From Wallemia ichthyophaga EXF-994 (lineage: Eukaryota; Fungi; Basidiomycota), in NCBI RefSeq assembly GCF_000400465.1, contig NW_008806284.1, forward strand, positions 314,932-346,931: a stretch of DNA of 32,000 nt, in the 5' to 3' direction. Shown piece after piece: positions 1,457-26,894 of the stretch. The translations under genes and the position numbers were made by a program. Position 1 is the first letter of the stretch. Every line of letters begins with the position of its first letter. The notes beneath the pieces are model-generated. The model was not told where the DNA came from. It saw only the letters and a list, made by a program, of their open reading frames with translations, and did not search any database.

Positions 1457-2245
1457 ATGAGCGTCGATATTGATTACACCAAGCTCGATCAAAGCCTGGC
1501 AGACAATCTGCTCAGCATTCTCAATGAGCGTCTCGAAGAGATGCAGAAACCATCGATCCTCGGCCACATCGAGTTTACGAATCTGAGTTGGTGGGTTTGA
1601 AGATGGCGGGAGATGCGCACCGCTGACGCATCCGCAAGGGGAGATATGGCGCCTGATATTGAACTGGAGGAAATTGGAGAGCTTTCTGAGGAGTTCAACG
1701 AGAGCGATGAGGAGGACGTGAATGGTGAGGATGAGGCGCACGAGGCGGCAGATCTCAAACACCCGGCACAAATTAGAGACAGCAACAACAACCACAACGC
1801 CAGTGAATCACAACCCAAAAGAGCCTCCTCAACAATCCCAAATATGCAGATACAGTTGCGCATTACGCACGAATCAGATATGCGTTTAACGCTGCTCACG
1901 AATCTTCTCGTAAACTTCCCAAGTCCAGGCTTTATGAGTTTGCCCGTCAAACTCGCAGTGCGGGGGATTGTGCTCCACTCGAAAGCCATCATCGGCATCG
2001 ACAGCCAGAGACGCCAGGTGCATTTCTCACTGGTAGAGCCATACGACGAGAACAGCGAGGATGACGACGATGTACAGAATCACATTCTCCAGAGTCTAGT
2101 CGTCGAGAGTGAGATTGGGGATGTGGACAGACACACACTCAAGAATGTGCGCAAGGTCGAGAATTTCGTACTCGAATACCTGCGTAATCTTCTCAATAAC
2201 GAGATTGTATGGCCCAATTACCACACGTTCATTCTCGATGATTAG
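1457..2245 (+). CDS. MDM12: ERMES complex subunit Mdm12 (SMP domain)
   Basis: Exons 1457-1590 and 1639-2245 (48-nt GTGGGT..GCTGAC..AAG intron). N-terminus MSVDIDYTKLD...LGHIEFTNLSWGDMAPDIELEEI, central LLVNFPSPGFMSLPVKL and C-terminal IVWPNYHTF are typical of fungal Mdm12. Confidence 0.9.
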
Positions 2246-2545
2246 CGTGTGCGATTGGCAGGGGAGTTGCACAAAATATACCACAAGCACAGCAAAAACA
2301 TAGCTCGATTGTATAGAATACTCAATGAATTTGTATATTAGACGGCTCGAGGCGAGCGCGGAGACTACTACGGATACATCTCGCAGCTAGCACAAGAAGA
2401 ATTTGAGAAGACAGCACAGTTAATAAAAGGGCTAAAACACCTACACGCGCCTCTAATATACTCTCACTCGATTTTAAATATTTTGAAAATTTGGTGACGA
2501 GAAGACTTTTTCGATGTGAGTTTCTTAGACCGCAACAGCTTCAGC

Positions 2546-2700
2546 GTGAGTAGAATTTTGAAGCAGGGAGAGTACGCAGGGTTAGAGAAGCCATGTGGAA
2601 TTGCTGAGCTTGTTTTTCATACTTTGGTTGTTTTTCTTACTTGGCTTGCTCGCTTTCGTACTCCCCAGCACCTACAAACACATCACTAACAAATCCACAG
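2546..2700 (+). other. 5'-UTR intron of RPL5 (155 nt)
   Basis: GTGAGT at 2546; CACTAAC branch and CACAG ending at 2700, 4 nt before the ATG at 2705. Confidence 0.7.
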
Positions 2701-2704
2701 TAAC

Positions 2705-3649
2705 ATGCCATTCGGTAAATAGACCTACTGTACACTTGCCACACCTCCTAACAAACCCTTAGTCAAGGAAGCCAAGAGCAACGCTTACTTCTCTCGCTAC
2801 CAAGTCAAGTACCGTAGACGTCGTGAGGGAAAGACCGACTTCTACGCTCGTAAGCGCCTTGTGACCCAAGCCAAGAACAAGTACAACGCACCAAAGTACA
2901 GACTTGTCGTCAGATTCACCAACACCAACATCATCTGTCAAATTGTCTCTTCAAAACTTCAAGGTGACGTTACTTTGACCCAAGCTAGTGCACGCGAGCT
3001 TCCAAACTATGGTATGAAGAACGGTCTCACATCATGGACTGCAGCCTACGCTGTTGGTCTCCTCGTCGCCAGAAGAGCGCTCACCAAGCTCGGTTTGGCC
3101 GACAAGTACGAGGGTGATGTCGAAGCCACCGGTGAATACAGTCTCACTGAGCCACTCGGTGATGACGAGCCAAGACCATTCAAGGTCTTCCTTGACGTCG
3201 GTCTTAAGCGTACCTCCACCGGTTCCAAGGTCTTTGGTGCCCTCAAGGGTGCCTCAGACGGTGGTCTCTACGTCCCACACTCCGAAAACCGTTTCCCAGG
3301 TTACGACATTGAGTCCAAGGAGCTCGATGCTGAGATTCTCCAAAAGTACATCATTGGTGGTCACATTGCTGAGTACATGGAGTCTCTTGAGGAGGAAGAT
3401 GAAGAGAGATTCAAGAAGCAATTCTCTCGTTACCTTGCCGACGGTGTTGGCTCCGATGACATAGAAGACATTGTCTCCAACACCCACGAGGCCATCAGAG
3501 CCAACCCAGAGTACAAAAAGACTGAAAAGAGCAAGGACTGGGCTTCCGAGAGCAAGAAACACAAGGCTACTAAGCTCACTAAGCAACAACGTGATGCTGG
3601 TATCCAACAACGTATCCAGTACTTCCAACAAGCTGAGAACGCTGAGTAA
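2705..3649 (+). CDS. RPL5: 60S ribosomal protein L5 (uL18)
   Basis: Exons 2705-2714 and 2763-3649 (48-nt intron) give [57 protein letters not shown]..., an unmistakable uL18 sequence. Confidence 0.98.
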
Positions 3650-3786: not shown

Positions 3787-5341
3787 TTAAGCAACCAGTT
3801 GATTCATTTTCAAACCTTGTACCGCTTGTGTTGCTTTTAGAAATGGAACACGTGGAGAATATTTTGGACACGCGGAGAGATCAACGAGAATGCAATACCG
3901 GATAAGAAAGTGAGTTTTTGAGGCCAAGCATACGTATGGTATTGCTAAAAACTTCACGTTCACGTGTCGGAGTAATGGACAAGTAGTTAAGAGCTCAGCT
4001 TCAGCACATTTCCTCTTTTCAGTCTTGACATGGATAGTTGAGGACAATTGGTGGACACTGAATACTAGATGAAGATACTAGACACTCGTGGACATTTAGT
4101 TGAAAGTACTTGCCTTAGCTGTCTTGGGAGCTGATCTTACATTATAGGTTGTGGCTACCTCGCCACTGGCATGTCTTCTCTATCACATATGCGCTTTATA
4201 ATTTTCAGTTGCCTTCACTGTATGCTCACTCCTCTAAACCACTCCACAAAACCTGGCTGATCCGTGCGTGTATGGGCTTGGCATAATTTAGAAAATAATA
4301 AATCCCAAAAAGTAGAGGAAATGAATCTGACCAAGGCATAGTCTACTAACTTTAATTCAAACTTCGTCATGACTTGGGTTGATGGTATTGAAGATGAAGA
4401 CGCCAAAGCTGCTGAAACCGTTGGCATTTCTGAAGGCCTTGTATCATTAACTAGTGCTCTGATTTCATATGGAAGATTGTTTGAGTCATTGTGACGCAAA
4501 ATACCAGTGTTTGTGTGTACATAAGTCTCGGATGCGAGCAACTCTATGATTTTGGCCGTTTTCGAATGTAGCATCTTCATAAAAAGCAAGGTCTTGGTCG
4601 CCTTCAAGAGTTACATCTTCCTCGACAGGTGGATATGGCTCAGAAACTTGGAAGGCGACCTCTGAAACTGCAGTAAAAGTGCTAGAGAGCTACTTGTCCA
4701 TTACAAGACCAAACCCGCCATAGATTACAATTGCTCGTATAAAAGCAACGCCGTCTGATTGAAACTTGCAAAGGTAGAATGATCAAAGGATAGCGAAGGG
4801 AAATGTTCAAGACACCGTTTTGGACCTGATCGAGAGGCGCGCAGAATTATTCAAATTCGTTAAACGCGGCGATCTTTGAAGCGGAAGGAAAATTAGGAAG
4901 TGGTGAGAGTAAACTTGTCAAAGGTTTAAACATAGTTATTTATTAACCTACCTTTATCTCCAACCACTGCTCCAGAGCTCAAAATTTGCATTCGAAGATC
5001 CCAGATAATGACAAACGCGTCTTGATTCCTATCATTTAGCCGAAATAAACACGTCAAAGTGAAAAGCCTCGACAAGTCCTATCATGCGCCCAAGTCTTCT
5101 TTTTAGAATACATGCGCAGCTTGACCTATCAATCATTTCTTAAGCCATGCATCCATGAACTTGTGCGAGGCAAATTACGGGAAGCAAGCTCATTAGCGGC
5201 GATTATCTGAGCACGCCTCCGCTGAAAAGATTCTCCTCTTTGAAGATTTTCAGACGAATATCGCCCTGCCCAAAGATCTCTTGGATACTTAAGTCCTGAT
5301 TTGCAATAGCCCAAGATGACGAGATGTTTTAAAAGATTCAA
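3787..5341 (-). pseudogene. Fragmented coding-like region, possibly a decayed LRR/RNI-like (F-box-type) gene
   Basis: Several coding-like frames broken by stops and frameshifts; recurring xCPxL/V motifs (TKCPRV, NCPQL, TTCPLL, SACPK) at 3800-4130. No intact splice path was found. Confidence 0.35.
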
Positions 5342-5883
5342 TTGTCACACATGATATTCATCGTCGTTCTAGCTATAGTCAGAGGACAATGTTCAACGGG
5401 TGCTGATGCTGTGGGAATTGAGTGCAAGCTTGCGACGGTGCTATCATTAAAGAACGTTAGTCTGAAATCTGCATTAAAGTTCAGACGATATGACGATGTG
5501 AAGACAGCAACGCCTTAATTCAATCATGGTGGAGGGCAATACATCAATTCACCAGATGATCAAGACATATGCATAGGAATAGGGGTGAATTGCTAGATCT
5601 GTAGAGTTTCACTTACACGAAACACGATTGTATAGGTAATCTATTGTCGAAATACTTGAACAGCTCCTAGGCATAAGGTACAAGGCACGTCTCCTTCCAA
5701 TTTATTCCGCTGGGCGAAGTTTAAGCTGAGTAGCTATGAAATCAACAGATAGGCATATAATAATTTAAATATATTCATAATCCTGTCAACTTTGTTATAC
5801 ATACAATCAAGCTATCCTTATTATAGTAGAAATCAATAAATAGAAAGTCCTAAAGTGACGAGTGAAAGTGCAATGTCTCGCCG

Positions 5884-8081
5884 CTAAACAGCCTTGTTTC
5901 CCTTCTTATTTTCCAGCTCGTGTATTTCATTCTGTAAGTCTCTCTCCTTCCGATCTCTTTCCATCCGTTCAAGCCCAGCTTTTGCCATGTTGTGCGTTCG
6001 AAACATAGGGTTAATCAACCGTCGCCATTGTTTGCCGGTGAAGTTGACTGGACTACCCAGTCCACTATAGATGCAAAAGTCGTACGCTAATGCACCTAAG
6101 ATCGAGCCGCCGAAGGATCCCAAGATGGGCCCAGTTAGCCACCTGCTATTGTGAGATGATGATGTGTGATGAGAGAAAATTACCCACCACCATCTATCGT
6201 GCGTCCATAGCTCCTTCCCGTAGCCAACGCAACTGAGCATGATGCGTGGGCCGAGGTCGCGAGCTGGGTTCATGGCATATCTGGTGAGTGTGATTGCTCA
6301 GGGAAAATTCACGTGCTAAAGACACCACACTCACCCGCTTAAAGCACCTAGAGACGTACCTATGGCCATAATGATTAGTGCAAGAACTAGAGCACCCAAA
6401 GACGCTCCAGGTGGCGTATTGTCACGATCACCAAGGGCTAAAACACTCGATGTCAATACTGCAGTCGCGATGACTTCCTGATACACTGCAAGACCGATGG
6501 TAGTATTTTCTGTTGTGGGGATTGTAGGGAATAACGCAGCTGTGCCACTCGAAGACACCGTCTTTGCGGGATCTATGTTGTAAAGAGACTGACAGTACAT
6601 TCCATAGACCGTAAAGCTTCCGATAAATGCACCTAGAACCTGTGCAATCCAGTATTTCCAAAGCATTTTCCAAGGAAATCCTCGAAATAAAGCAAGAAAA
6701 AGAGTGATGGCTGGGTTAAGGTGGCCACCAGAAACACCACCAGCAATGTAAACGCCAGTCATGACTCCAACGCCGAATCCCCAATTCAAATTCGTATATG
6801 CAGCTGTCTGATTTGTATAAATAAGTGTCTGACAGCTGGCGCCAGTGCCAATAATCATAAATACACACGTCCCGAGCATCTCTGCGAGCGGTTCCCGCAT
6901 GTATTCTCTAATGTTGAACCAAAAATTGTAAATGGGTTCATCAGGATTCTCATACTTTTCTTGTTCAATGGGATCATCAAGCCACTTATTTTCCATTTCT
7001 CCAACCTGCCCAGTGCCACCGCCTTGTGGGTAATTTTGCGACTTGTCAGTGTTATATGACAGAGAGCGGTCCTGATCAGCGGCCGGTGTGTCCTTTTGAC
7101 CATCTATAATCCCACCGACCTGACCTTCCTCCTTTCCCTGAGTATCGCGATTAGTTAAATCCTTATCGTCTGACTTCTTGTCTGCCATCTCCTTGTCTGC
7201 CTGCTCCTTGTAGTAGCTATGCTGCTGTGTCTGGGTAGGAAACCTTTTGCTAGGCTGAGGACGAGCAAACGACGGTCTTCTGTTGTCATCGATAACACCC
7301 CCGACCTGAAATGGTGTTCTGCTTGATTTTGTACTTTTATTGTCTTCCATCATTCCGCTTACTTGGCCAAAAGGAGTATTATGCTGACCAGGTGTTATTC
7401 CAGGTGTTATTCCAGGTGTTGTTCCAGGTGTTGTACCCGGTAAATTGAAATAGTCACCGGCCTGGTTGGTGTGATGAGATGGTGGCTGGGAACTCGAGTA
7501 GCTAGAGCCGAATTTGGTTGATCCTAAGTTTCCCGTGGGGAGAGATGGTGTGTTACCCGTGATACTAGACGCCTGCTGATAGCCTAGTTCCCTGCCTCTG
7601 GAGAAAACGGCTTCTGCAGCTGCGTTTAAGACTTCTTGGCCACTTCCGCTAATATCGTTGTTTCTGCCTTGAGTCTTTCCACTTTCATGATTGCTAGGCT
7701 TCTCTGAATCCTCAGCAGGGAAGACACCCCCAATGCCCCAAAGGGGACGTTTGCTTTTTACTCTGCGCATGTGCTCATTGTGCTTAGCTGTAATATTATT
7801 TTGGTGCTGTTGCTGTTGTTGCTGCTTCTGCTCTTTCTGGTTCTTTATAAAGCTTTCTTCGTCGTTTGCCTGTTGTTGCTGAGAATCGGTGAGTTTATCC
7901 TGTTGCTCGGGTTGCTTGAGCTGATCTCCCCCTGTGGGTGCTTGTGATTGTGCTTGAGGGGATCCTACGTGTGGTGTGTTTGGTCTGCTCTCTTCTTCTG
8001 GCTCCTCTTTCAACGTATCGTGCGTTGATATCTATGAACGCCTTAGAACACTATCAGATACATAGACATGGCACTCACCAT
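5884..8081 (-). CDS. Aquaglyceroporin (MIP family, GlpF/Fps1-like) with long hydrophilic N-terminus
   Basis: Exons 8081-8079 (ATG only), 8031-6335, 6280-6188, 6142-5884; introns 47, 54 and 45 nt. Both NPA boxes present: GGHLNPAIT and GYAMNPARDLGPR. The D after the second NPA is typical of glycerol channels. Confidence 0.93.
7388..7440 (-). repeat. 12-nt coding tandem repeat (about 4.5 copies) encoding PGTTPGTTPGITPGITPG
   Basis: ccaggtgttatt x2, ccaggtgttgtt, ccaggtgttgta on the + strand. Confidence 0.95.
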
Positions 8082-8549
8082 AAAGTTGAAATTTTGTCCT
8101 TATCGTAAATTCCGAACGGCTTACCAAAAGTGAGGATTTTTGACAGTGTGTCATTCTGATTTCACCGATTTTTCATATTTTTGAGTAATGACGACATGAC
8201 TTTAAAGTTATATAACAGCCGTTGCCGTAAACCTTATATTATTAGCCGTTCCTTCTTAGCCCTGTAAACCAAGCGCTGAATGTCCGTCTCGATGCCGGTG
8301 ATGCCGCCGTTATCACGAGATATTTTACAAATTAGCTGCATTCGTAGATATACATGTACATTCCTGATCGCTAGCCGTGGCGTGCCTCAATAAAGAAGGA
8401 AAGGGTCCTTTGGTTTACAACGGAGTGCCTGATTTGCGAGAAAAGTGTATTTAGCGTGTTTAATTCGTCTGGATAAGCTTCCACAGGCTATACACCAAAT
8501 CATGCCTCCGCTAAAATCTCTCTGACTCCCACTACCTTCACCCTACGTT

Positions 8550-9641
8550 ATGACGTTGCGAGGATTTCTGCAGAACGCCAGGCTGCCCGTCATACAAGCG
8601 CCCATGGCCGGTGCCAGCACGCCCAAGATGGCGATAAGCGCGAGTAACTGCGGTGTACTAGGAAGTATCGGCTGCGGAATGATGCAGCCTAACGCACTCA
8701 AGAGCGCAATTAGAGAGACAAAAGCGGGGACTGAGAGACCATTTAATGTTAATTTATTCGTAACGGACAATCAAGAAGGATACAATGTGGACAGCGTCCG
8801 CGATAGGTTGGCGTGGCTATACGACTACTATACGGAGATGGGACTGGATTCACCACGTCCATCCACATTCGCACCCAAATTCGAGGAGCAGTTTGAAGCC
8901 CTCCTGGAAGCCCAGCCTCCTATTGCGTCGTTTGTCTTCGGTGGGATAGATATTGCACGCGTAAATGCCTTGCATGAGCGAAATATATCTGCAAGTGATG
9001 TAGCTTTACAATTCGCACTACTCACGACCATGTAATCTCAGGTAATAGGCGCCGCCACCACACCAACTGAGGCTGAATACTGGCAGAGAGTGGGTGCAGA
9101 TGGGATAGTTTTGCAGGGAATAGAGGCTGGTGGACACAGGTGCAGTTTCCTAGATCCAGAAAATCCAGGCGAGCCGCTCAGTGAGCTGCTCAAAGCGACG
9201 AGACATCTACACACACCGCTCATCGCAGCTGGCGGGATAATGAATGGTAGGGACGTGAGAGGTGCTTTGAGGCAAGGAGCAGACTGTGCACAGCTCGGCA
9301 CGGCATTTTTGACAACCGAGGAGTCACCTGTACCTGCATCATACCGTGAATCTCTCATCGCTGCCCATAATGACGATACCACTCTCACAAAGGCCTTTTC
9401 AGGGAGATGGGCACGCGGTATTAGGAACAGATTTACAGATATGGCTGGAGTGCAATTCACAGCTCCTTATCCAGTTCAGAATGCCCTCACTCAGCCTCTG
9501 CGTAGCAATGCAGCAACACATCACCGCTCAGATGAGTTATCACTGTGGGCAGGTATGGGTGTTGGGGCTGTTCGTGACTCTCCCTCTACTCCACACCTCA
9601 TCGATAAGCTGCAGAGGGAATATGATGGCTATAATATATGA
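8550..9641 (+). CDS. Nitronate monooxygenase (2-nitropropane dioxygenase family, FMN TIM barrel)
   Basis: Exons 8550-8990 and 9042-9641. Motifs PVIQAPMAG, RPFNVNLF, QGIEAGGHR, LIAAGGIMNG, QLGTAFL, FSGRWARGIRNRF, LSLWAG. Confidence 0.92.
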
Positions 9642-9748
9642 ACTTGAAGAATATATGTAATATTGTATTCAATTAACTCGCTTACAAAAATAAACTATAA
9701 CAAGACTTGCGTTGCTGTGTTTCTGAAAATTTTCTTAGACTACCCAGG

Positions 9749-10042
9749 CTAGTAATCATAATCATTTGGGCCTGGCTCATAGTCTGTTACTTGAACGCGG
9801 TAAAACTTGTTCTTGCTGCCAGGAGTTTCATTTTCGTTGGGGTCTGCGTTGAGGAGTGTATGTGATATACCGCCTCTCTTGAGCGGATAACGTGGCTTTT
9901 GCGGGTGTTCAGCGAGTTCAGTGTCTTTTGAATGCTCAGATTTCCTAGGGTGTTCGCAGTCACCCCCCTTTATTGGCACAGGCGATGCTGCTGTGACAAC
10001 CACTAGCATAATTAAGAGCAGTGTACACAATTGCCAGTTCAT
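9749..10042 (-). CDS. Small secreted protein (97 aa) with internal KR site
   Basis: Single-exon ORF with a classical signal peptide (MNWQLCTLLLIMLVVVTAA|SPVP), a hydrophilic body and a PLKR|GG dibasic site. Confidence 0.7.
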   Translation of the reverse strand: MNWQLCTLLLIMLVVVTAASPVPIKGGDCEHPRKSEHSKDTELAEHPQKPRYPLKRGGISHTLLNADPNENETPGSKNKFYRVQVTDYEPGPNDYDY

Positions 10043-10633
10043 TTCTCAGAAGCAGTTCACTGTGCTCTTTGAACTGTGGCTGATGTTGCTCTAACTTCCA
10101 CTTCTTCGCCACCTTCATACCATTCCATCCATCGGTGATTGAAATTTAGACTAAAGGCCGGGAACAATCCATGTGGAAAGATCAGCAGACAGATTTTGAT
10201 GTGACGGGATAAATATAGGTAGGATACATGATTTACACAAGAATTATGAGAAACGTGGTGTGTCTTAACATTCAACCAAGTTGAAGTGATGACTGGAGAG
10301 TCAGTAAAGTTCTGGTAAGGCTGTAATACCCACTTGAGCCGGCTTGGCTGCTACTATTGGCATGAAAGCCGCTAACGATAAAAGGAAAGATTTGGATTCT
10401 TGAGGGACTCGTAGGTTTTGATGGTGAAGTAAAGTGGAGAGAAATATCACAAATACAGCAAACAACGTCATCATATCATACCTGCTGCGCAAACATTTGC
10501 TTCCTTTTCAAAAGACAATATGCGATCAAGATGACATCAGAAAAAATCTTGGCTAATCAAACGCATTATTGTAGAGTGATGTAAACATAGTATACAAGCA
10601 GGCGTTAAAGGCATGTCTAAGAAAATGAGACAT

Positions 10634-10902
10634 TTAAATAGCCTTGTCTAAGGCGCCGTTAGCAACGTCATTCAAAAGACGCTTCTCTTCCTTCAGGAGG
10701 CTTAGTAAAAATGAAAACACACCACTTTAGTCCACACTTACAGTTCCACGCTTGAGGATCTTGTCAGCAGCGCCGTTGGCGACGTGGTCGAGGAGCTGAG
10801 CTGTTTTAGTATGCGGGTATGTGCTAGTAAAATTCCACTCACTGGTGCAGCAAAGGCGGTAGAGAGAAGGGCAATGGTGGCAGCGATGGCTGAGAGCTTC
10901 AT
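10634..10902 (-). CDS. 56-aa secreted repeat-peptide precursor (Kex2-processed repeat protein-like)
   Basis: Exons 10902-10843, 10795-10742, 10690-10634; introns GTGAGT..TACTAA..CAG (47 nt) and GTAAGT..TACTAAG..AAG (51 nt), all phase 0. Protein MKLSAIAATIALLSTAFAAP-LLDHVANGAADKIL-KR-GTEE-KR-LLNDVANGALDKAI*. Confidence 0.85.
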
Positions 10903-11099
10903 TTGAGCGATGGAAGTTGTCTGAGGAAAGCGTGTTGCGCGAATATTTATTCATTCAACCCGCGTTTACCTTCCTTTTCCGGATATGCTAAAATTTTACA
11001 TTCAAGAGATGTCGCATGTGAGAATTGGAAATTGATTGATTGAATTAATACAGAATCAAAGTTTTTGATGATTTGGTTGATGCTGTATCGTCAAATGGC

Positions 11100-11240
11100 T
11101 CAGCTAGTGTTTGGAAGGTCCTTTCTGGTTCTGAGAATTCCCTCAGCAAAGTTCTTAAATGAATCTTGTAGGATAGGATGTGCTGTGGATGACGTTGAAG
11201 TGGCTATAACGAGACCAGTGACGATTGCTAAAAATTTCAT
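11100..11240 (-). CDS. 46-aa secreted peptide
   Basis: MKFLAIVTGLVIATSTSSTAHPILQDSFKNFAEGILRTRKDLPNTS*. Signal-peptide-like N-terminus; TATA-like TATATTATAA about 45 nt upstream. Below the ORF-track length cutoff. Confidence 0.65.
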   Translation of the reverse strand: MKFLAIVTGLVIATSTSSTAHPILQDSFKNFAEGILRTRKDLPNTS

Positions 11241-11674
11241 TGCCTTGTGAGGAGTAGATGCGCAAAGCTGAGGAAGAAGATTATAATATAAAAAGATGCC
11301 TGCCTGAATTACTTATTTCGGTGTTTATTTGATTTAATATGTCGCAGTTTTGACTCATATTTTTGAGCGAACGAGTGTGAACAGGCTAGGATTTATAACA
11401 TTGTTCTGTTGATGATAAAGCATTTTGCCGGTAGAATAACAAATTATCGGTTTCTTTGTTGCCAGCGGTCACGTGAAATCGCTCGTAACGAACACCAACC
11501 ATGACACACTAAGACATTTACAATCAATTTAGCCACTATAGAATGCGCTTGAAAGCGCTTAAAAACGTTCATTGACTCATTTATTCCATTGACTCAACTA
11601 CGGATGACGAAACTCGGTCACCGCAGACCGAGCGACACTGAGAAATCACTTCATCGACAGCTTAATCGAAAACA

Positions 11675-12774
11675 ATGAGAGGATTATTTATTAAAGGCGA
11701 GCGTAGCGTTGAGATTAAAGACGTCGATCGACCAGCACTTGATGGACACAACGATATTCTCGTCGAGGTGGGTGATAAGCTCTCACAGGCACACCACGCT
11801 CACCAAACCACCAGGTTCACGCGGTTGCACAGAACCCACCCGACAGTTTCTCACTCCTCGGTAGTCCCGGTAAACCTGGCAATCGCCTGGGAAGTGACTA
11901 TGCGGGTGTTGTCGTTGAATCAAAATCAGACTGTGTTAAAATCGGTGACAGAGTCTGTGGTATGGTATCTGGCAACCACTCACCCCACCAAGGCTCATTT
12001 GCTGAATATTTAGCTACTTCCGCAGATCTCACTATCAAGATACCATCAGCGATGTCATTTCAATGCGCCTCTACACTCGGCATGTCCCTCTTCACTGCCA
12101 TTCAAGCGCTCTTTCTCAAATCACCACTTGCTCTCGACCCCAACCACACCAAGGCAGTCCTCATCTGGGGCGCTAGCACTGCTATTGGCATGTACGCGGT
12201 GCAACTCGCTCACATCAGCGGTATAAAGATAGTGGCTACCACGAGTGAGAGGAATAAAGATCTAATTTCCTCCCTTGGTGCCCACATCGTTTTTGATTAC
12301 AAAGATGCAGACGTGGTTGAGAAGGTGAGGGAATCTACAAACGACAATGTCACCTTCGCAATTGATTGCGTCGGCTCGCCAGAAACTCTCAAAAGTACAG
12401 TCGCATGTGCATCTGATGCGCAGTCAGCTACCGTGCACACTGTCCTGCCTCCCGCGAAAGATTTCAAAGCTAAGGCAAGTTCGAACGTCGTCTTCTCGCT
12501 CGTACACTCCGGCTTCGCTGAGGACCTCTCTTGGGCTAACTACCTTTTTCCCCGCCCCGTTACGATGGAGGAGATGATGCAGGAGCGCAAGGAGGCTGTC
12601 GCGTTCTTCGGTTACGACAGAGGCACAATCCCCGGTCTTTTAAGAGATGAAATTCTCAAAACTACACCTATCGTCGCGACCAGCAAAGGGCTGGAAAATA
12701 TCTTACCTTGGCTGCTCAAGATGGAAAAGGGTGAAATCAGAGCTGGTAAAGTTGTACATCTTTTGAAGGAATAA
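11675..12774 (+). CDS. MDR-superfamily enoyl reductase-like / zinc-type alcohol dehydrogenase-like protein (ToxD/LovC-like)
   Basis: Exons 11675-11767 and 11815-12774 (47-nt intron). Motifs VHAVAQNP.D, LGSDYAGVV, GDRVCG, GSFAEY, NADPH-binding VLIWGASTAIG. Confidence 0.9.
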
Positions 12775-13062
12775 TACGTTTTGCGAATAAGCTCATGTGC
12801 TATTTTCTGTATACTTTATTGCTTGATCTAAAATTTCCAAATGAGGATGGTCATTTTGATGAATGGTCTTCTGGTCGTCTAATTCTTATGTTGTTCAGCG
12901 ATGCATGATGTATCGCTTCATAGAAATTGATTGGGGGTAATTATGCAACCTAATCACATAAATTCCATCACACTTCAAATCTCCCAGTTAATCCGACTTC
13001 TGTCTTTCTTTTCACATCGTCTTCGAGTGCATCGACAAGCATGACGCAGCAATGACTCACTG

Positions 13063-13093
13063 AAATCTAATCAAAGACAATCTAATCAAAGAC
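13063..13093. repeat. Short tandem duplication (aatctaatcaaagac x2)
   Basis: Direct 15-nt repeat in intergenic DNA. Confidence 0.8.
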
Positions 13094-13248
13094 ACACATG
13101 AATTGGGCATATGACGGCGTGTATCATAGCGCAAATTAATTTCTCCTACATTATTCAATGCGTGCCTCGACATGCATGATTCACATGTGCTTGTGAGAGC
13201 GTTCAAAAAGGAGGACAGTCACCATATCCTGTATTCATACAACCAAAA

Positions 13249-13563
13249 ATGACAATTGAAACAGGTGACGAGAAGAAAGTATACAAAATCCGCCTTCAGC
13301 TCACGGCCACAGATGCCGCGTTCCAAGACATTTTCGAGCTTATCAATCAGAGTGAGGTGTTTTAGTGAAAGATGCTAGGCTTATACATTCACACAGCTAG
13401 CAATAGGGTATGCACACTTTTACAATACGAGTCAGCCGGTATCTATCGTTGGCTGGACGTTGTCTCCTCATACAATTCCTTATACAGGCTGCAACACGAG
13501 TACTACGGCGGCGCAATTATAGAGGACTTCGTTCTCATAAACAACCTTCCTCCTCCTTATTGA
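13249..13563 (+). CDS. Possible 61-aa protein with a 7-nt microexon
   Basis: Exons 13249-13351, 13401-13407, 13488-13563 (GTGAGG and GTATGC donors) restore one frame: MTIETGDEKKVYKIRLQLTATDAAFQDIFELINQTIGLQHEYYGGAIIEDFVLINNLPPPY*. Confidence 0.35.
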
Positions 13564-13641
13564 GTTGTCCGAACGCTTTTCAGTACCTTATTTGATTACT
13601 GCGCGCTAAATGCATTTGAAATTTCTTTTTGAATCGCATTC

Positions 13642-13983
13642 ATGACTCTTGGTGGGTGCACGCGTGTACTCAGAACCTGTCTTAGCTTTAAAGTCTGTGT
13701 AGGCTTGTTTGTCGTAGTGTTCCACAATTCAACGCCAAAAGACCACATCTTACGATTGATGCGACTGCTGATGCTCTATGGTGGGTGGGTGGATAGGAAT
13801 GTTGATAGTCTTACGAACATCAAGACAGGTGCTAATATACATGAATTCAACGACGACAAAAAAAATAGCACGCAATTAGAGTTTGAAATTGAGGAAGAGA
13901 GTATGGTTATGCAGAATATGCGTAACGACCCACATATTTGGGAAGTCGCCAAGGCTAGTAACTTCAAAAAGGTAAAGCCATAA
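13642..13983 (+). CDS. Hypothetical protein (only the 3' half looks coding; start uncertain)
   Basis: ORF-track 113 aa; the segment RNVDSLTNIK...ASNFKKVKP has normal globular composition. Confidence 0.25.
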   Translation: MTLGGCTRVLRTCLSFKVCVGLFVVVFHNSTPKDHILRLMRLLMLYGGWVDRNVDSLTNIKTGANIHEFNDDKKNSTQLEFEIEEESMVMQNMRNDPHIWEVAKASNFKKVKP

Positions 13984-14901
13984 ACAAGATATGCCCGCAA
14001 GTACTTTAATATCAATCTTAACACTTTAGATACCCCTATTTTTGTATCACTGGCTTTTTAAATAAGGTTTCATATTGTCCATTGTTGTGGTCGGCCAACT
14101 TTATTATGACGTGCTATTGCGACCATGCCTGGCCTTCGGTATGCCATTGCTCCAAAGTGGAGATGCTACTGATAATAGATATTATATGATGTTTACGATT
14201 GCTATTTGCTGCGTATGTGAATATGAGACAATGAGAATAACGCAGGAACGCATGCACTGGCTCCACAATGCATGATATTCGACTCAAACATCACAAGCGC
14301 GCTCTGCAGTCGATATAAAGTATATTTACCATGTAAACCACTCATATCTACTTCAGAGCCCCTGCATAATCAACGAGAATTAATGATGCAGAGCTGCTAT
14401 GGTGACTGATATCATCATGTCAGATAAGTAAATGTGTGCTGTATAATTAACAAATGAAGTCATTGCAGTATGTTTGTAAATGTCATACATGTGTACTGTT
14501 TGACTTAATCCTCGTTGCGTATTTGCCAACAAATGTTCTCAAATCTCTCCTCAGATGTCCATCAGCAATGCTTGAAGCTTAGCTGCAGATTGACGTACTA
14601 ATCAAGCAATATCCATTGACTTGCCGCTAGTTTAGTATGATCCATTGTCTCGATTATTTTGAAAGGTAAATTTTCAGCTTACTGTTTTTTTTCCACTTCA
14701 AGGATCGCCGAAGTTACTTCGATATTTGGCTGAATACTTGAAATCATACATCATAAACAGCCGGCGTGAGCTGAATATTCATAAAGCAGTAGGAAAGATA
14801 GTCCTAAAGCCGGGTTAAGGGTAAGAATCAGGCAAGTATACACATAAACTATTGATTGTTTAATACAAAAGCAGCATCGAAAGTATTAGATGCTAAGCAG
14901 C

Positions 14902-15712
14902 TCAGTATTTCTTATCGTCCTTGTACTTATCTTTGTTGCTGCTGTGCTGTTTGTCGTTGCTGTCGGACTTTTTGTCGCTTGACTTTGTATCGTCGGGCTT
15001 GCCATCGTCGTGTTTCATGTTGTTGTGCTTATCGTCGTAATTTTTATGCTGCTTCTTTTCACTTCCGTCCTTCTCACCACCATGCTTCTTGTTATTGTTG
15101 TCATGCTTCATTTCGTTATATTTCTTTTGGTCATGATACATGTCTTGCTCGTTGTCCTCGTAATTTTTGTTGTCGCTGTGCTTCTTGCCATTGTCAGTAT
15201 ACTGCTTATCTTGGTGCTTCATACCGCTGGACTTCATGTTGTCATACTTGTCATCATGTTTCTTGTCGTTGCTGCCGTGCTTGTCATCATAATTTTTGTC
15301 ATTGCTTTCATACTTGTCATGCTTCTTGTCAGACTTCCAGTATTCGTCAGTCTTCTGGTAAAACATTGTAAGCTAATTTTCACCAAACATCACTTCAACC
15401 AACCCTGACATCCGCTTTGTTCTTCTCAGCAGCCTCATTGTTCAGCTTGATTTGCTTCTCAACTTCCTCGCGATGCTTCTTGAGTGCCTCTTCGTGGGAT
15501 AGCTTGTCTTGCTTGTCGTATTTGCCGTGGTTGTTGTCATTCTTGGCATCGACACCATTACCATAGTTGTAGTCATCCTTGTGGTCTTTGATGGCGTTGG
15601 CGTCTTTCTCATCTCCGCGACGGGCGATGTTGTCTGGTTGTGTGACTGCTGCTGATGCGATGGTGCCAGTGAATGCAAGAACGGCGAGAGCTTTGGCGGT
15701 GTTGAAGTACAT
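14902..15712 (-). CDS. Secreted Asp/Lys/His/Asn-rich repetitive protein (251 aa)
   Basis: Exons 15712-15410 and 15354-14902 (55-nt intron). Signal peptide MYFNTAKALAVLAFTGTIASA, pro-segment ending IARR, then degenerate KHDDKY/NYDDKH repeats. Confidence 0.85.
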
Positions 15713-16344
15713 TTCTGTCTTTTGGGATGTAGAAAAGCAAGAAGGATATAGCGCTTCTTATAAAGCCAGCTGGGCTGATGATTCTTCTGCTATAGTCACA
15801 TCTCGTCATTCTGCCAAGCTAACGAGGCTGAAGCATTATGTGGCGCAAATTAAGGGTATATATGAGCATATATAGTATTGTAATAAGGACATTTTGTTGC
15901 TGGAAAGCTTCTGTTGCTGTCAGAGCTCTATCCACTCTCATCTCGACGGCAAGTGGGCTGATATGGCCAAATTGAGCTTAACTAGGATCTTTAAGCTGCT
16001 CGCGGAGTACAGGCATGTTAACGCCCAGTATATCTCGGAATAGATTTGGTGATAGCCGTTAGATCGCTCAAGAATTCTGATGGCTTTAAGCATTGCAATA
16101 TAGCTTTCTAACGCAATAAGCCTCACGCATACACGCACATACGCACACCCAAGTACTGCATCCTCTAAGATATCCACCGATGAGGCATCTCGGCTATATC
16201 CTCGGATGCGTAACACGCTGAGGAAACCAAAATTGCACGCCCGCGTACAGACCCTGCCCTCGAAAATCGCTTAAAGATTTTATCGAGCTCACCCCTTTAA
16301 TAAAATCTCCACAATGCGGGGTGATCAGTTACCGCTCGACGCTC

Positions 16345-18727
16345 ATGACTAGCACCGAGAAAAGAAACAAGAAGTCGAAGATTACGCGGGCTGTGAGTTG
16401 TGCACGTGCCGATAACCGTCATCTAACGCTTTGACCAGTGCGACGGATGCAGGTGAATAGCGGCACCAGCAGCACGTACACTCTAACATCAGGGCCAGGA
16501 AGAAGAAAATCAAGTGCAATGCTGATATCACGTATCCCAACAAGTGCTCCAACTGCAAAAATATGGAATGCATTTACACGAACAAGGGCTTCCACAGCCC
16601 GAGCTACGTTAGCGATTTGGAGACGAAGCTTGCCGAAAGCGAGGGCGTCATCGAAGAGTATAGGAGACTGCTCGACAAGTACGCACCGCCAGAAGTACTC
16701 GCGGCTGAGACGGACACTGCTAAGCGGAAGCGGAATTTTTCCATCCCCTCCCCCAGCGCGCAAATGCACATGCACATACACACAGAAGCCTCCGATATGA
16801 ATGACGGCATTTATGTCGATGAGACGACGGAGAGCTGCAGGAAGGAGGGATGTCTGCTTAAGACACTTGGCGATGGAAAAACAGTTCATAATCACCCCGG
16901 AAAGCAAAAAAGATTCTTTGGAAAGGGGAGTATCCGTGGAATTATCGAGAGATTGAGCACTTATACTGGCTTCTCCCCTACTGGACTTTTAAGCGGGAAA
17001 AGACCTCACTTTTGGCAAGAGGATTTGCTTATCGATGGACTAGACTACCTTCCTGTGCATATGTTGAGCCCTGACTTGGTGGAGTCTTTGGTTGGCTTGT
17101 ACTTTGAGAAAGTCAATAGCACACTCCCGCTTCTCGATAGAACTCGCTTCTTTGCCGAAATAGCTTATCGCAGGCACGACCGTAACTTTGAAACCCTGCT
17201 AATGACAGTACTGGCGATAGGATCTCAGTACTCCAACGATCCGCGTGTTATGATTGAAGGTCAGCACCAGTTCCTGGCAGGATTCAGATACTACAGTGTT
17301 GCCAAAAGCAAGATGATAGACCCATACATGGATGTGGCGACTATCGAGGATATACAAGCGCTTATTCTGCTGCAAATATACGTACCCAAAAGCATACATT
17401 CGAGGAGCGGATGGATGATTCACGGTACTACCGTGCTTTTAGCGCATGATATTGGACTGCATTCACGTTTTGTTGACACTGATCTACCCCCGCAAGACCA
17501 AGAGTTGAGGAAGAGAGCGTACTGGTCGCTGTATCTTCTCGATCGAGTGCAGGCGTCCACTTTCGGACGTCAGCCGCTGATAAAGGACAACGAGATCAGT
17601 CTAGACCTGCCAGACAATGAGCTAGGTGATGGGGAGTCTGAGTGTTGTGTACTGTACTTCAACATGCTTATCAAGCTGTACAATATCCACGGACAGATCT
17701 TGCAGACAATTGTGAGTATCGTCTTGACGTTGCTCTCAGGCAACGAGCTCACAACACAACAGTATAAACTGAGGAAGACTTCAGATGGTGATGAGCTGTT
17801 GATGTCGTTGACAGACATCGCGTCGCTAAATTCGAAACTGAACAAATGGCTAAATGAAATACCGCAAATGTTGAAGGATGGTAAAAACGAGGTCCCGAAA
17901 AAGCTGGCACACGGAAGCAACGGAAAGGATGAGTATGTTTATCAGCTGTACAGTAATCTGCAACTAGCGTTTCACATAATTCAGGTGAGCACAGAAGTGC
18001 ATGAAATAACACGCATCTAACAAGCGCAGATCGGGCTGTACAAAACATTCCTTCCAAATCCACGCTCGCAGTCAACTTCGAGCTTTAGATACACGAGTCT
18101 AGTCATATGCGCGACCTCAGCGCGGAGCATCATTTCAATATACCGCGACATGCTGCTAGAGCGCAAGATGCAGCATCTGTGGGTGGATGCTACGGTAGCG
18201 TGGGGAGTGAGTGATGAGGATATTTTAAGTGGAGTGCTCTGCTAACTTCCACATAGTCTTTCAGTGCTACGCTGATACTCATCATCAGCGCATGCGAGGG
18301 TCTTAGGAACAACGATCTGGACCCATCAGTGTTTGGATTTATACAGTCAGGCATCCAGATCCTCAGAGTGAGGGAGGAGAGGGAGGTGTTGAATGGGAGG
18401 GCGGTGGATATGATAATGCAGATACTTAAGACATCCAACCTCCCAATGGACCCGTCATTCATGCAAGCGCAGGAAAATATAAGCTACGGGGCATCAGCTG
18501 ACAATTTCTTCACCGACCTGCCCTTCCTCGTCGACACACCACCTAACCACGCTGAGTCGAACGAGCAGATGTTCACAGATCTGCTCGGTCAGGTGCAGTA
18601 TAACACGGTTGACGCGGCCGCACTCGGCGTCGGCGGCACTCCGCCCCTCGATAGCTTCTTGCAAATCAACACTCAGGATTGGTCGAATGTGCTCGAGACG
18701 TTCCTCAGCGGTGCTGGAGGGATGTAG
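16345..18727 (+). CDS. Zn(II)2Cys6 transcription factor with fungal-specific TF (middle homology) domain
   Basis: Exons 16345-16392, 16439-16452, 16499-17711, 17763-17984, 18030-18206, 18257-18727. KITRACDGCRKKKIKC...CSNCKNMEC cluster; RKRAYWSLYLLDR...STFGRQPLI motif; acidic C-terminus. Confidence 0.92.
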
Positions 18728-26582: not shown

Positions 26583-26894
26583 GCTGAAATAAATCCTAGC
26601 ATCTCAAGGAGTAGTATCCTAATGTGATGGAGATCTAAAGATCCAAGCAATCATAAAGATGTTTTGGCGGCAATAGGTTTAATTGGCTTTTGTAACCCAG
26701 GGCTTGCCCTACAACCGCTACCAGTGGCTATGGAGTGGCTGAAATAAATCCTAGCATCTCAAGGAGTAGTATCCTAATGTGATGGAGATCTAAAGATCCA
26801 AGCAATCATAAAGATGTTTTGGCGGCAATAGGTTTAATTGGCTTTTGTAACCCAGGGCTTGCCCTACAACCGATACCAGTGGCTATGGAGTGGC
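26583..26894. repeat. Tandem duplication of a 155-bp unit (2 copies, 1 mismatch seen)
   Basis: gctgaaataaatcctagcatctc... starts at 26583 and again at 26738; the difference seen is accgCtacc vs accgAtacc. Confidence 0.95.

Follow-up and report, generated by a model that had tools for sequence, protein, structure and literature searches.

What do three very short genes, set side by side between two oxidoreductase genes of a basidiomycete, encode, and do they work together as one system? The question is raised by a stretch of 32,000 nucleotides from Wallemia ichthyophaga EXF-994 (contig NW_008806284.1, positions 314,932 to 346,931), which we call the window and to which coordinates refer unless another contig is named. 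A sequence-only reading of the window had proposed that three microgenes within 1.5 kb, here g1, g2 and g3, make up a co-regulated and undescribed secreted-peptide locus. The explanation that we favour, at a probability of roughly 0.55 and with processing argued by analogy, is that the locus comprises three independent, Wallemia-restricted genes for small secreted pro-peptides, which would have been adjacent since before two Wallemia species split.

The three microgenes are present and co-oriented on the minus strand as had been described, with a nitronate monooxygenase (NMO) gene on one side and a reductase gene (ADH_zinc_N/MDR) on the other according to Pfam (lengths and positions in Table 1). 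For comparison we used three other W. ichthyophaga strains that carry the locus (L002-L004) and a contig (L005) of a different Wallemia-like species from the Logan collection, in which public sequencing runs are assembled. The gene order major-intrinsic-protein (MIP)-NMO-g3-g2-g1-reductase was found in the three other strains and in the second species (L005/L006), where all three microgenes lie in the same order and on the same strand between the same two oxidoreductase genes. The flanking genes are about 75-77% identical between the window and L005 at the nucleotide level, and the C-terminal part of NMO is 71% identical; the flanking enzymes are about 71-78% identical between species, compared with 93% for the g2 protein (52 of 56 residues). 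The spacer could not be aligned by blastn except for islands, namely g1, g2 with its introns and untranslated regions (UTRs), the two halves of g3, a 24-nt element and a 66-nt block.

To measure selection, dN/dS was calculated by the Nei-Gojobori method for the window against L005. Values were dN 0.047, dS 0.54 and omega 0.086 for g2, dN 0.17, a saturating dS and omega about 0.12 for g3, and dN 0.31, dS 0.61 and omega about 0.52 for the N-terminal 43 codons of g1. The C-terminal parts of the flanking enzymes gave dN 0.173, dS 0.87 and omega 0.20 (NMO) and dN 0.129, dS 0.97 and omega 0.13 (reductase). Furthermore, coding sequence is about fourfold less variable than spacer within the species: among the four strains, 7 of 606 coding columns vary (g1, 1/141; g2 exons, 1/171; g3, 5/294) against 59 of 1265 spacer columns (4.66%; Fisher p = 4e-5). 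These results collectively show that g1, g2 and g3 are genuine genes, conserved in synteny and under purifying selection.

Each product begins with a sequence of the signal-peptide type, as the sequence-only reading had it. A Lys/Asn n-region leads into a hydrophobic core 10 or more residues long (mean Kyte-Doolittle value 2.2-3.4), after which come a small -3/-1 site and a hydrophilic remainder. The predicted signal peptidase sites (marked by a slash) are STA/HP in g1, AFA/AP in g2 and TAA/SP in g3, which bears out the proposed x-P mature N-terminus, and the Pro at +2 is kept in the orthologues (RP, AP and AP). This signal-peptide rule was passed by 12 of the 130 ATG-initiated open reading frames (ORFs) of at least 40 aa in the window, 4 of which fall inside the 1.5 kb where about 0.56 would be expected, a count made post hoc. 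From these N-termini we infer that each product would enter the secretory pathway. The claim of a dibasic or basic site in every product stood for g2 (two KR at the repeat boundaries) and g3 (one KR, in PLKR/G, kept in the orthologue); it applies loosely to g1, whose RTRK (KTRQ in the orthologue) is not a canonical Kex2 site. The numbers of cysteines are 0 in g1, 0 in g2 and 2 in g3 (one in the signal peptide and one in the pro-region), and the C-termini are ...PNTS, ...DKAI and ...DYDY, respectively.

The g2 protein reads MKLSAIAATIALLSTAFA/AP-LLDHVANGAADKIL-KR-GTEE-KR-LLNDVANGALDKAI. It is 100% identical to the hypothetical protein J056_000800 of W. ichthyophaga EXF-994, and the NCBI exon model matches ours. 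Its two repeats resemble each other significantly (p about 2e-4 by shuffling), each 14-residue unit occupies its own exon, and both KR sites fall exactly at the unit boundaries (...KIL-KR-GTEE-KR-LLND...) and are kept in L005. In exon 2, the 14-mer and its KR are identical in L005 and the changes within the 14-mer are all synonymous; the only replacement, T38S, lies in the spacer. The positions and splice signals of both introns are conserved as well, while numerous substitutions and indels separate the intron sequences. Within the species 4 of the 51 columns of intron 2 vary, compared with 1 of 171 in the exons. This intron is 47 nt long in L005, where its retention would shift the frame, which makes the 73-aa intron-retaining models of other strains unlikely. 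With the stop codon in EXF-994, the 47-nt length in L005 and the hypervariability taken together, the 56-aa form is the conserved g2 product.

The KR sites at the unit boundaries and the significant internal repeat support a reading of g2 as a processed-repeat precursor. In the proposed pathway, signal peptidase would cut at AFA/AP, a Ste13-type dipeptidyl aminopeptidase (X-Pro) would take off AP, and Kex2 would cleave behind each KR, which Kex1 would then trim away. This would release LLDHVANGAADKIL and LLNDVANGALDKAI as linear 14-mers (monoisotopic masses 1448.80 and 1425.78 Da), both starting with LL, along with the GTEE spacer. Their net charge of -1 indicates that the g2 peptides are not of the cationic antimicrobial type.

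Such a pathway has precedents. KEX2-processed repeat proteins (KEPs) are defined by a signal peptide, at least 3 similar fragments after in-silico cleavage at KR, RR or KK, and a share of repeats in the protein of 15% or more. W. ichthyophaga and W. sebi rank among the species richest in them: each has 6, which make up 2.1% of its secretome (Le Marquer et al. 2019, PMC6339444). Like KEPs, g2 has a signal peptide without a transmembrane domain (a heuristic call, kept in L005) and near-identical tandem cores with KR between them, the cores accounting for 28 of 56 residues (50%); as with most KEPs, the family is limited to one genus. Because the pipeline of that survey needs at least 3 repeats, g2, which agrees with the definition in all other respects, could not have been reported. 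The g2 protein differs from KEPs in having no pro-region, in having each core in its own exon and in that its cleavage is predicted, and g3 differs in having no repeated cores. Processing of basidiomycete KEPs to linear peptides by KEX2/KEX1/STE13-type enzymes, including removal of XA/XP dipeptides, has been demonstrated (Vogt et al. 2022, PMC9769878), and orthologues of KEX1, KEX2 and STE13 have been reported in Basidioascus undulatus (Geminibasidiales; tentatively classified in Wallemiomycetes) (PMC4500085). About 78% of the KEPs in one survey have no DUF3328 neighbour (Umemura 2020, PMC7329392). The Wallemia genes likewise have none, and linear peptides would result.

In Saccharomyces cerevisiae, the secretory alpha-factor precursors (MFalpha1/2) are converted to linear peptides of 13-14 residues by Kex2 (at KR), Kex1 trimming and Ste13 removal of X-A/X-P. 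The g2 precursor resembles them in the AP ahead of the first core and in its 14-residue cores, and differs in lacking a glycosylated pro-region. Basidiomycetes are known to use Ste3-type receptors and lipopeptide pheromones, and a mating role for g2 is therefore not expected. By analogy with both classes, we infer that g2 is a minimal two-core KEP / alpha-factor-like precursor. The word 'undescribed' does not fit the locus, since public records of g2 and g3 as hypothetical proteins already exist and the architecture of g2 is that of this known class.

The g3 protein reads MNWQLCTLLLIMLVVVTAA/SPVPIKGGDCEHPRKSEHSKDTELAEHPQKPRYPLKR/GGISHTLLNADPNENETPGSKNKFYRVQVTDYEPGPNDYDY, in which the signal peptide MNWQLCTLLLIMLVVVTAA (followed by SP) is succeeded by a variable pro-region, a conserved PLKR/G and a conserved C-terminal peptide of 41 aa. 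The L005 orthologue has 77 aa, and the 17-aa indel is confined to the pro-region, where the only within-species replacements (S35P/T and S38P) also lie; the tail keeps the motifs TLLNADP... and KFYR[VI]QVTDYEP..NDY. The conservation of PLKRG beside this indel and the restriction of replacements to the pro-region support a pro-peptide reading, in which a single cut at PLKR/G would drop the fast-evolving pro-region and free a disordered, acidic, Tyr-rich peptide of 41 aa. AlphaFold gives g3 a pLDDT below 50 and no secondary structure past residue 18 and no fold after the signal helix; g2 being helical and g3 disordered in prediction fits peptide precursors better than folded domains. Among public proteins, g3 falls into the cluster of J056_000799. 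In that public g3 model (EOR00601.1, 103 aa; window 10003-10118), an upstream exon, MKVAKKWKLEQHQPQFKEH, and an intron replace the signal peptide. In L005 this exon has no counterpart, whereas the ATG at 10042 is retained, as is the hydrophobic N-terminus, with synonymous changes; the 97-aa g3 is thus the better model. The g3 models of other strains have 86 aa and start at the internal Met12.

Other known peptide systems resemble the microgenes in part. K2PP effectors such as SnTox3 reportedly have a Kex2-processed pro-domain and are folded and usually cysteine-rich. Like them, g3 starts with a signal peptide, and its short, variable pro-domain ends in L-K-R ahead of a conserved mature part; unlike them, it has neither cysteine nor a predicted fold in its mature part, the only Cys past the signal peptide lying in the pro-region, and Wallemia is not a plant pathogen. 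Qsp1 of Cryptococcus neoformans is said to be a small secreted pro-peptide that the extracellular protease Pqp1 matures to a short linear quorum-sensing peptide; it and the Wallemia microgenes are both basidiomycete small pro-peptides, with no sequence similarity and a different maturation route. Precursors of a-factor-type lipopeptide pheromones are unlike g1-g3, which lack a C-terminal CAAX box and all have signal-peptide-like N-termini, and hydrophobins and small secreted cysteine-rich proteins are unlike them too, as g1-g3 have no multiple-cysteine pattern. Rep1 of Ustilago maydis is a secreted repeat protein that Kex2 cuts into peptides acting at the hyphal surface (PMC7329392, PMC9769878). 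It is likewise a basidiomycete secreted repeat protein, but it yields many peptides of about 35-55 residues without sequence similarity to the Wallemia peptides, and a surface role like that of Rep1 is speculation for the latter. The most likely place of action of the Wallemia peptides would be extracellular, whether they serve as signals or on the cell surface.

Homologue searches placed all three genes within Wallemia. No Pfam family was found for g1, g2 or g3, and Rfam gave nothing in 9600-11700. The g2 searches matched W. ichthyophaga only, and an HMMER scan of 1.84 billion representatives with g3 matched Wallemia only, besides weak multi-stretch matches to CCDC53 repeats. The latter were rejected as chance: they are repeats of a WASH subunit, the L005 orthologue is not matched (E = 4.6), and the matching segment overlaps with the pro-region, of which L005 lacks a part. 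Two metagenome scans returned no homologues, and the exact g1 sequence had no match in the public protein collection. The three genes are lineage-restricted, with no homologues outside Wallemia found in the protein and metagenome collections searched.

Table 1. Microgenes, their parts, nearby conserved elements and neighbouring genes in the window.
Feature	Position	Strand	Remarks
g1	11240..11100	-	46 aa; single ORF; unannotated
g2	10902..10634	-	56 aa; three exons, two introns; J056_000800
g2 exon 1	10843..10902	-	signal peptide MKLSAIAATIALLSTAFA, then AP
g2 intron 1	10796..10842	-	47 nt, GTGAGT...CTCAG; position kept in L005, sequence diverged with indels
g2 exon 2	10742..10795	-	repeat 1, LLDHVANGAADKIL-KR-GT
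g2 intron 2	10691..10741	-	51 nt, GTAAGT...GAAG; in-frame TAA in this strain
g2 exon 3	10634..10690	-	EE-KR-LLNDVANGALDKAI and stop; repeat 2
g2 3'UTR	10557..10633	-	blocks conserved between species: CTGCTTGTATACTAT, TACAATAATGCGTYTGA
g3	10042..9749	-	97-aa ORF; public model J056_000799
Element upstream of g1	11330..11353	-	24 nt, CAAAAYTGCGACATATTAAATCA; 96% identical between species (blastn island)
Island between g2 and g3	10341..10404 (ORF 10301-10474)	-	66 nt; 77% identical to L005 11287-11352
NMO gene	8550..9641	+	Pfam PF03060; syntenic in L005; convergent with g3
Zinc-type ADH / MDR-family reductase (ER) gene	11675..12774	+	Pfam PF00107 (ADH_zinc_N), ADH_N in strain annotation; syntenic in L005; divergent from g1
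MIP gene	ORF 6331-8013	-	part of a 692-aa model in strain annotation
Fungal_trans transcription factor (Zn2Cys6) gene	16563-18020	+	Pfam

The g1 protein reads MKFLAIVTGLVIATSTSSTA/HP-ILQDSFKNFAEGIL-RTRKDLPNTS, and its mature part after the signal peptide MKFLAIVTGLVIATSTSSTA is HPILQDSFKNFAEGILRTRKDLPNTS. Its absence from the annotation is explained by its length, as 141 bp falls under the 150-bp cut-off below which the population-genomics pipeline dropped coding sequences (PMC6738226). An orthologous N-terminus lies at L005 12503..12381 (56% identity). In that species the gene (L005 12063-12503, minus strand) encodes a secreted-type protein of 146 aa, in which the common N-terminal unit is followed by three significant repeats of about 34 aa (DAPxDLGxDxDxxQINxN...V.G....F) bounded by TR / KR and then DAP / DATAP. 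This longer protein has no Pfam family, and a search of the protein collection matched itself only. Compared with KEPs, it has three repeats with R / KR boundaries, but just one boundary KR. The W. ichthyophaga g1 stops after the first unit, and under the pro-peptide reading it would be a short form that keeps the first 14-residue unit of what is a three-repeat protein with R / KR and DAP boundaries in the sister species.

A tentative alternative, which we consider possible though not likely, is decay or loss of function of at least part of the cluster in W. ichthyophaga. On this view g1 would be the truncated remains of a longer gene for a repeat protein, and the 66-nt island that separates g2 from g3 would be a fourth gene, now dead. 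The end of g1 at 46 codons, compared with 146 aa in L005, and its omega of about 0.5 would fit. The DNA just past the g1 stop is also weakly like the L005 coding sequence (p about 0.02), a hint only, since the similarity is not significant at the protein level. In L005 the island has an ATG, a signal-peptide-like MQFFTLLALAAIVPFLAARPIP and a GTAGGT splice donor; in the window ATC replaces the ATG, and strain L004 has a frameshifting 1-nt deletion. The island may be what remains of a fourth microgene with a signal peptide, or it may be non-coding but conserved. However, all four strains have the g1 ORF intact, and its 141 nt carry a single synonymous change in these strains, against 4.66% variable spacer columns (p = 0.025); the 24-nt element upstream of g1 is conserved as well. 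This element, which sits in the 435-bp spacer between the divergent g1 and reductase genes, probably belongs to a promoter. In addition, the direction of change needs an outgroup, as the long or the short form of g1 could be derived.

Several points weigh against the reading of g1-g3 as pro-peptide genes. The signal peptides were called by a crude rule of our own (core, -3/-1 site and hydrophilic remainder), and between-species conservation rests on one other species, which limits its depth. g1 has no canonical dibasic site, neither KR nor RR. g2 has two cores, short of the at least 3 of the KEP definition, and, unlike in alpha-factor, its KR sites are followed by GTEE or LLND and not by XA/XP, while the X-P follows the signal peptidase site. 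The g2 14-mers were rejected as marked amphipathic helices (moments 0.33-0.50, unexceptional against shuffles for g2), and so were g1 and g2 as paralogues, which have the layout X-P, 14 residues and basic site in common but whose similarity is not significant (p 0.06-0.3). As for expression, the GME numbers of Zajc et al. (2013) were mapped by length and sequence (GME3030, L5e; GME3032, NMO; GME3036, an 89-aa gene), and GME3033 and GME3034, the two annotated genes between NMO and ER, were taken as g2 and g3 by gene order. Neither is among the genes of Table S4 with an RPKM (reads per kilobase per million mapped reads) above ~68; like 58% of all genes, both fall below that value.

It is rather unlikely that the products are ordinary orphan small secreted proteins, uncut at basic sites and with incidental KR, in which case g2 would be an intact helical protein of 36 residues and g3 a disordered acidic one of 77 residues. 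AlphaFold predicts a helix for g2 (pLDDT 77), with the mature part as one continuous helix, and one KR in the 77 residues of g3 is near the chance expectation; the lack of KR and RR in g1 points the same way. In Coprinopsis, KEP-derived peptides persisted in all kex knockouts tested, including the kex2a/kex2c double (kex2b was tested as a single knockout only), so the processing rules are not simple (PMC9769878). Against an uncut product stand the two g2 KR sites, conserved between species at the boundaries of a significant repeat, and the conserved PLKRG of g3, directly upstream of which lie the 17-aa indel and all within-species replacements.

We regard as improbable a bolder version of the pro-peptide reading, in which the nearly invariant g2 14-mers would be a diffusible autocrine/quorum-type signal specific to Wallemiomycetes and alpha-factor-like. 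The other members, g1, g3 and the relic island, would then be left over from an old pro-peptide gene 'nursery' kept at one locus. To our knowledge, the Wallemiomycetes are a basidiomycete class without a known sexual cycle.

The proposal that the genes form a co-regulated system fared less well than that of their reality. Across the three microgene promoters compared, no upstream motif of 8 nt or longer was both conserved between species and shared between genes, and the three products have no significant similarity to one another; a g2-g3 match (LKRG...LLN) is marginal (p 0.04). GME3033 and GME3034 are absent from the table of genes differentially expressed between 10% and 30% NaCl (Zajc et al. 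2013), which leaves salt regulation of g2 and g3 unsupported. The 89-aa gene GME3036 (~13243-13563, plus strand), which has no family, is listed there as induced at 30% NaCl, with only 0 vs 12 reads. A fourth secreted protein that had been noted 3.7 kb away (14902-15712) does exist, with a signal peptide and an ARRG, but its link to the cluster does not hold, as it is absent from the 20-kb syntenic L005 locus. This protein (minus strand) has 254 aa in strain annotations, is very rich in K, D, N and H, of low complexity and without a Pfam family, and its gene contains a 33-nt tandem repeat at 15243-15320.

A functional link to the oxidoreductases or the Zn2Cys6 factor, offered as speculation by the sequence-only reading, found little to sustain it. 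It is very improbable that the NMO and the MDR reductase, perhaps under the Zn2Cys6 factor, modify the peptides as in a cluster of the RiPP type (peptides of ribosomal synthesis with post-translational modification). The sole hint of linkage is that the MIP-NMO-g3-g2-g1-reductase block is intact in both species despite rearranged outer flanks, and two species with no breakpoint over 6 kb are weak evidence; the 435-bp spacer with its conserved element is, in addition, shared divergently by g1 and the reductase. Within ~9 kb, no peptide-modifying family (DUF3328/UstYa, methyltransferase, P450, tyrosinase or prolyl oligopeptidase) was found by Pfam among the window ORFs scanned or in the strain-loci table covering window 617-20912, and a dikaritin-type (ustiloxin-like) RiPP cluster is likewise without its DUF3328/UstYa gene in this range. 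Moreover, the L005 locus has neither the Zn2Cys6 gene nor that of the fourth protein, the enzymes are encoded on the strand opposite to the microgenes, and no conserved motif is shared by the three microgene promoters, to which the comparison of upstream regions was limited. The adjacency of g1-g3 is best read as shared history and not as an operon-like functional unit.

That g1-g3 are chance ORFs or a non-coding feature is extremely improbable: all are very short, g1 is unannotated and neither Pfam nor Rfam gives a match, but the bias of between-species substitutions to synonymous sites, the conserved intron-exon structure and the low coding variation exclude this for g2 and g3 and make it unlikely for g1.

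If the processing model of the favoured reading is true, W. ichthyophaga would secrete two 14-residue peptides and one 41-residue peptide, nearly unchanged among species of Wallemia, a rarity in orphan genes, and these would be tractable candidates for extracellular signalling or cell-surface functions. W. ichthyophaga is obligately halophilic and the most halophilic fungus known. The annotation needs correction in three places: g1 is missing, the public g3 model has no signal peptide, and the g2 models of other strains keep an intron. With such faulty models, secretome and KEP surveys of the genus undercount precursors of this kind, and KEP pipelines that ask for three repeats overlook two-core precursors like g2. 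The locus is real but fairly ordinary.

The surroundings of the locus yielded some minor observations. The L5e ribosomal and Mdm12/MMM1 genes (window 1489-3649) lie upstream of MIP in W. ichthyophaga; their L005 counterparts (L005 16644-18664) lie downstream of the reductase, past an extra short-chain dehydrogenase gene, and the breakpoints of this rearrangement flank the conserved MIP-to-reductase block. EXF-994 differs from the other W. ichthyophaga strains by 1-5.4% per kb at window ~4000-16000 (also at 1-2000), most strongly at 8-9 kb (5.4%) and in the MIP gene at 6-7 kb (4.4%); at 2-4 kb the figure is only 0-0.3%, and at 16-21 kb it is 0.2-0.7%. Across the genome, a SNP density of 0.13-0.40% has been published for the species (PMC6738226); the microgene cluster thus lies inside a high-diversity haplotype block. 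Elsewhere in the window, a 155-bp unit is duplicated in tandem at 26583-26894 with 99% identity.

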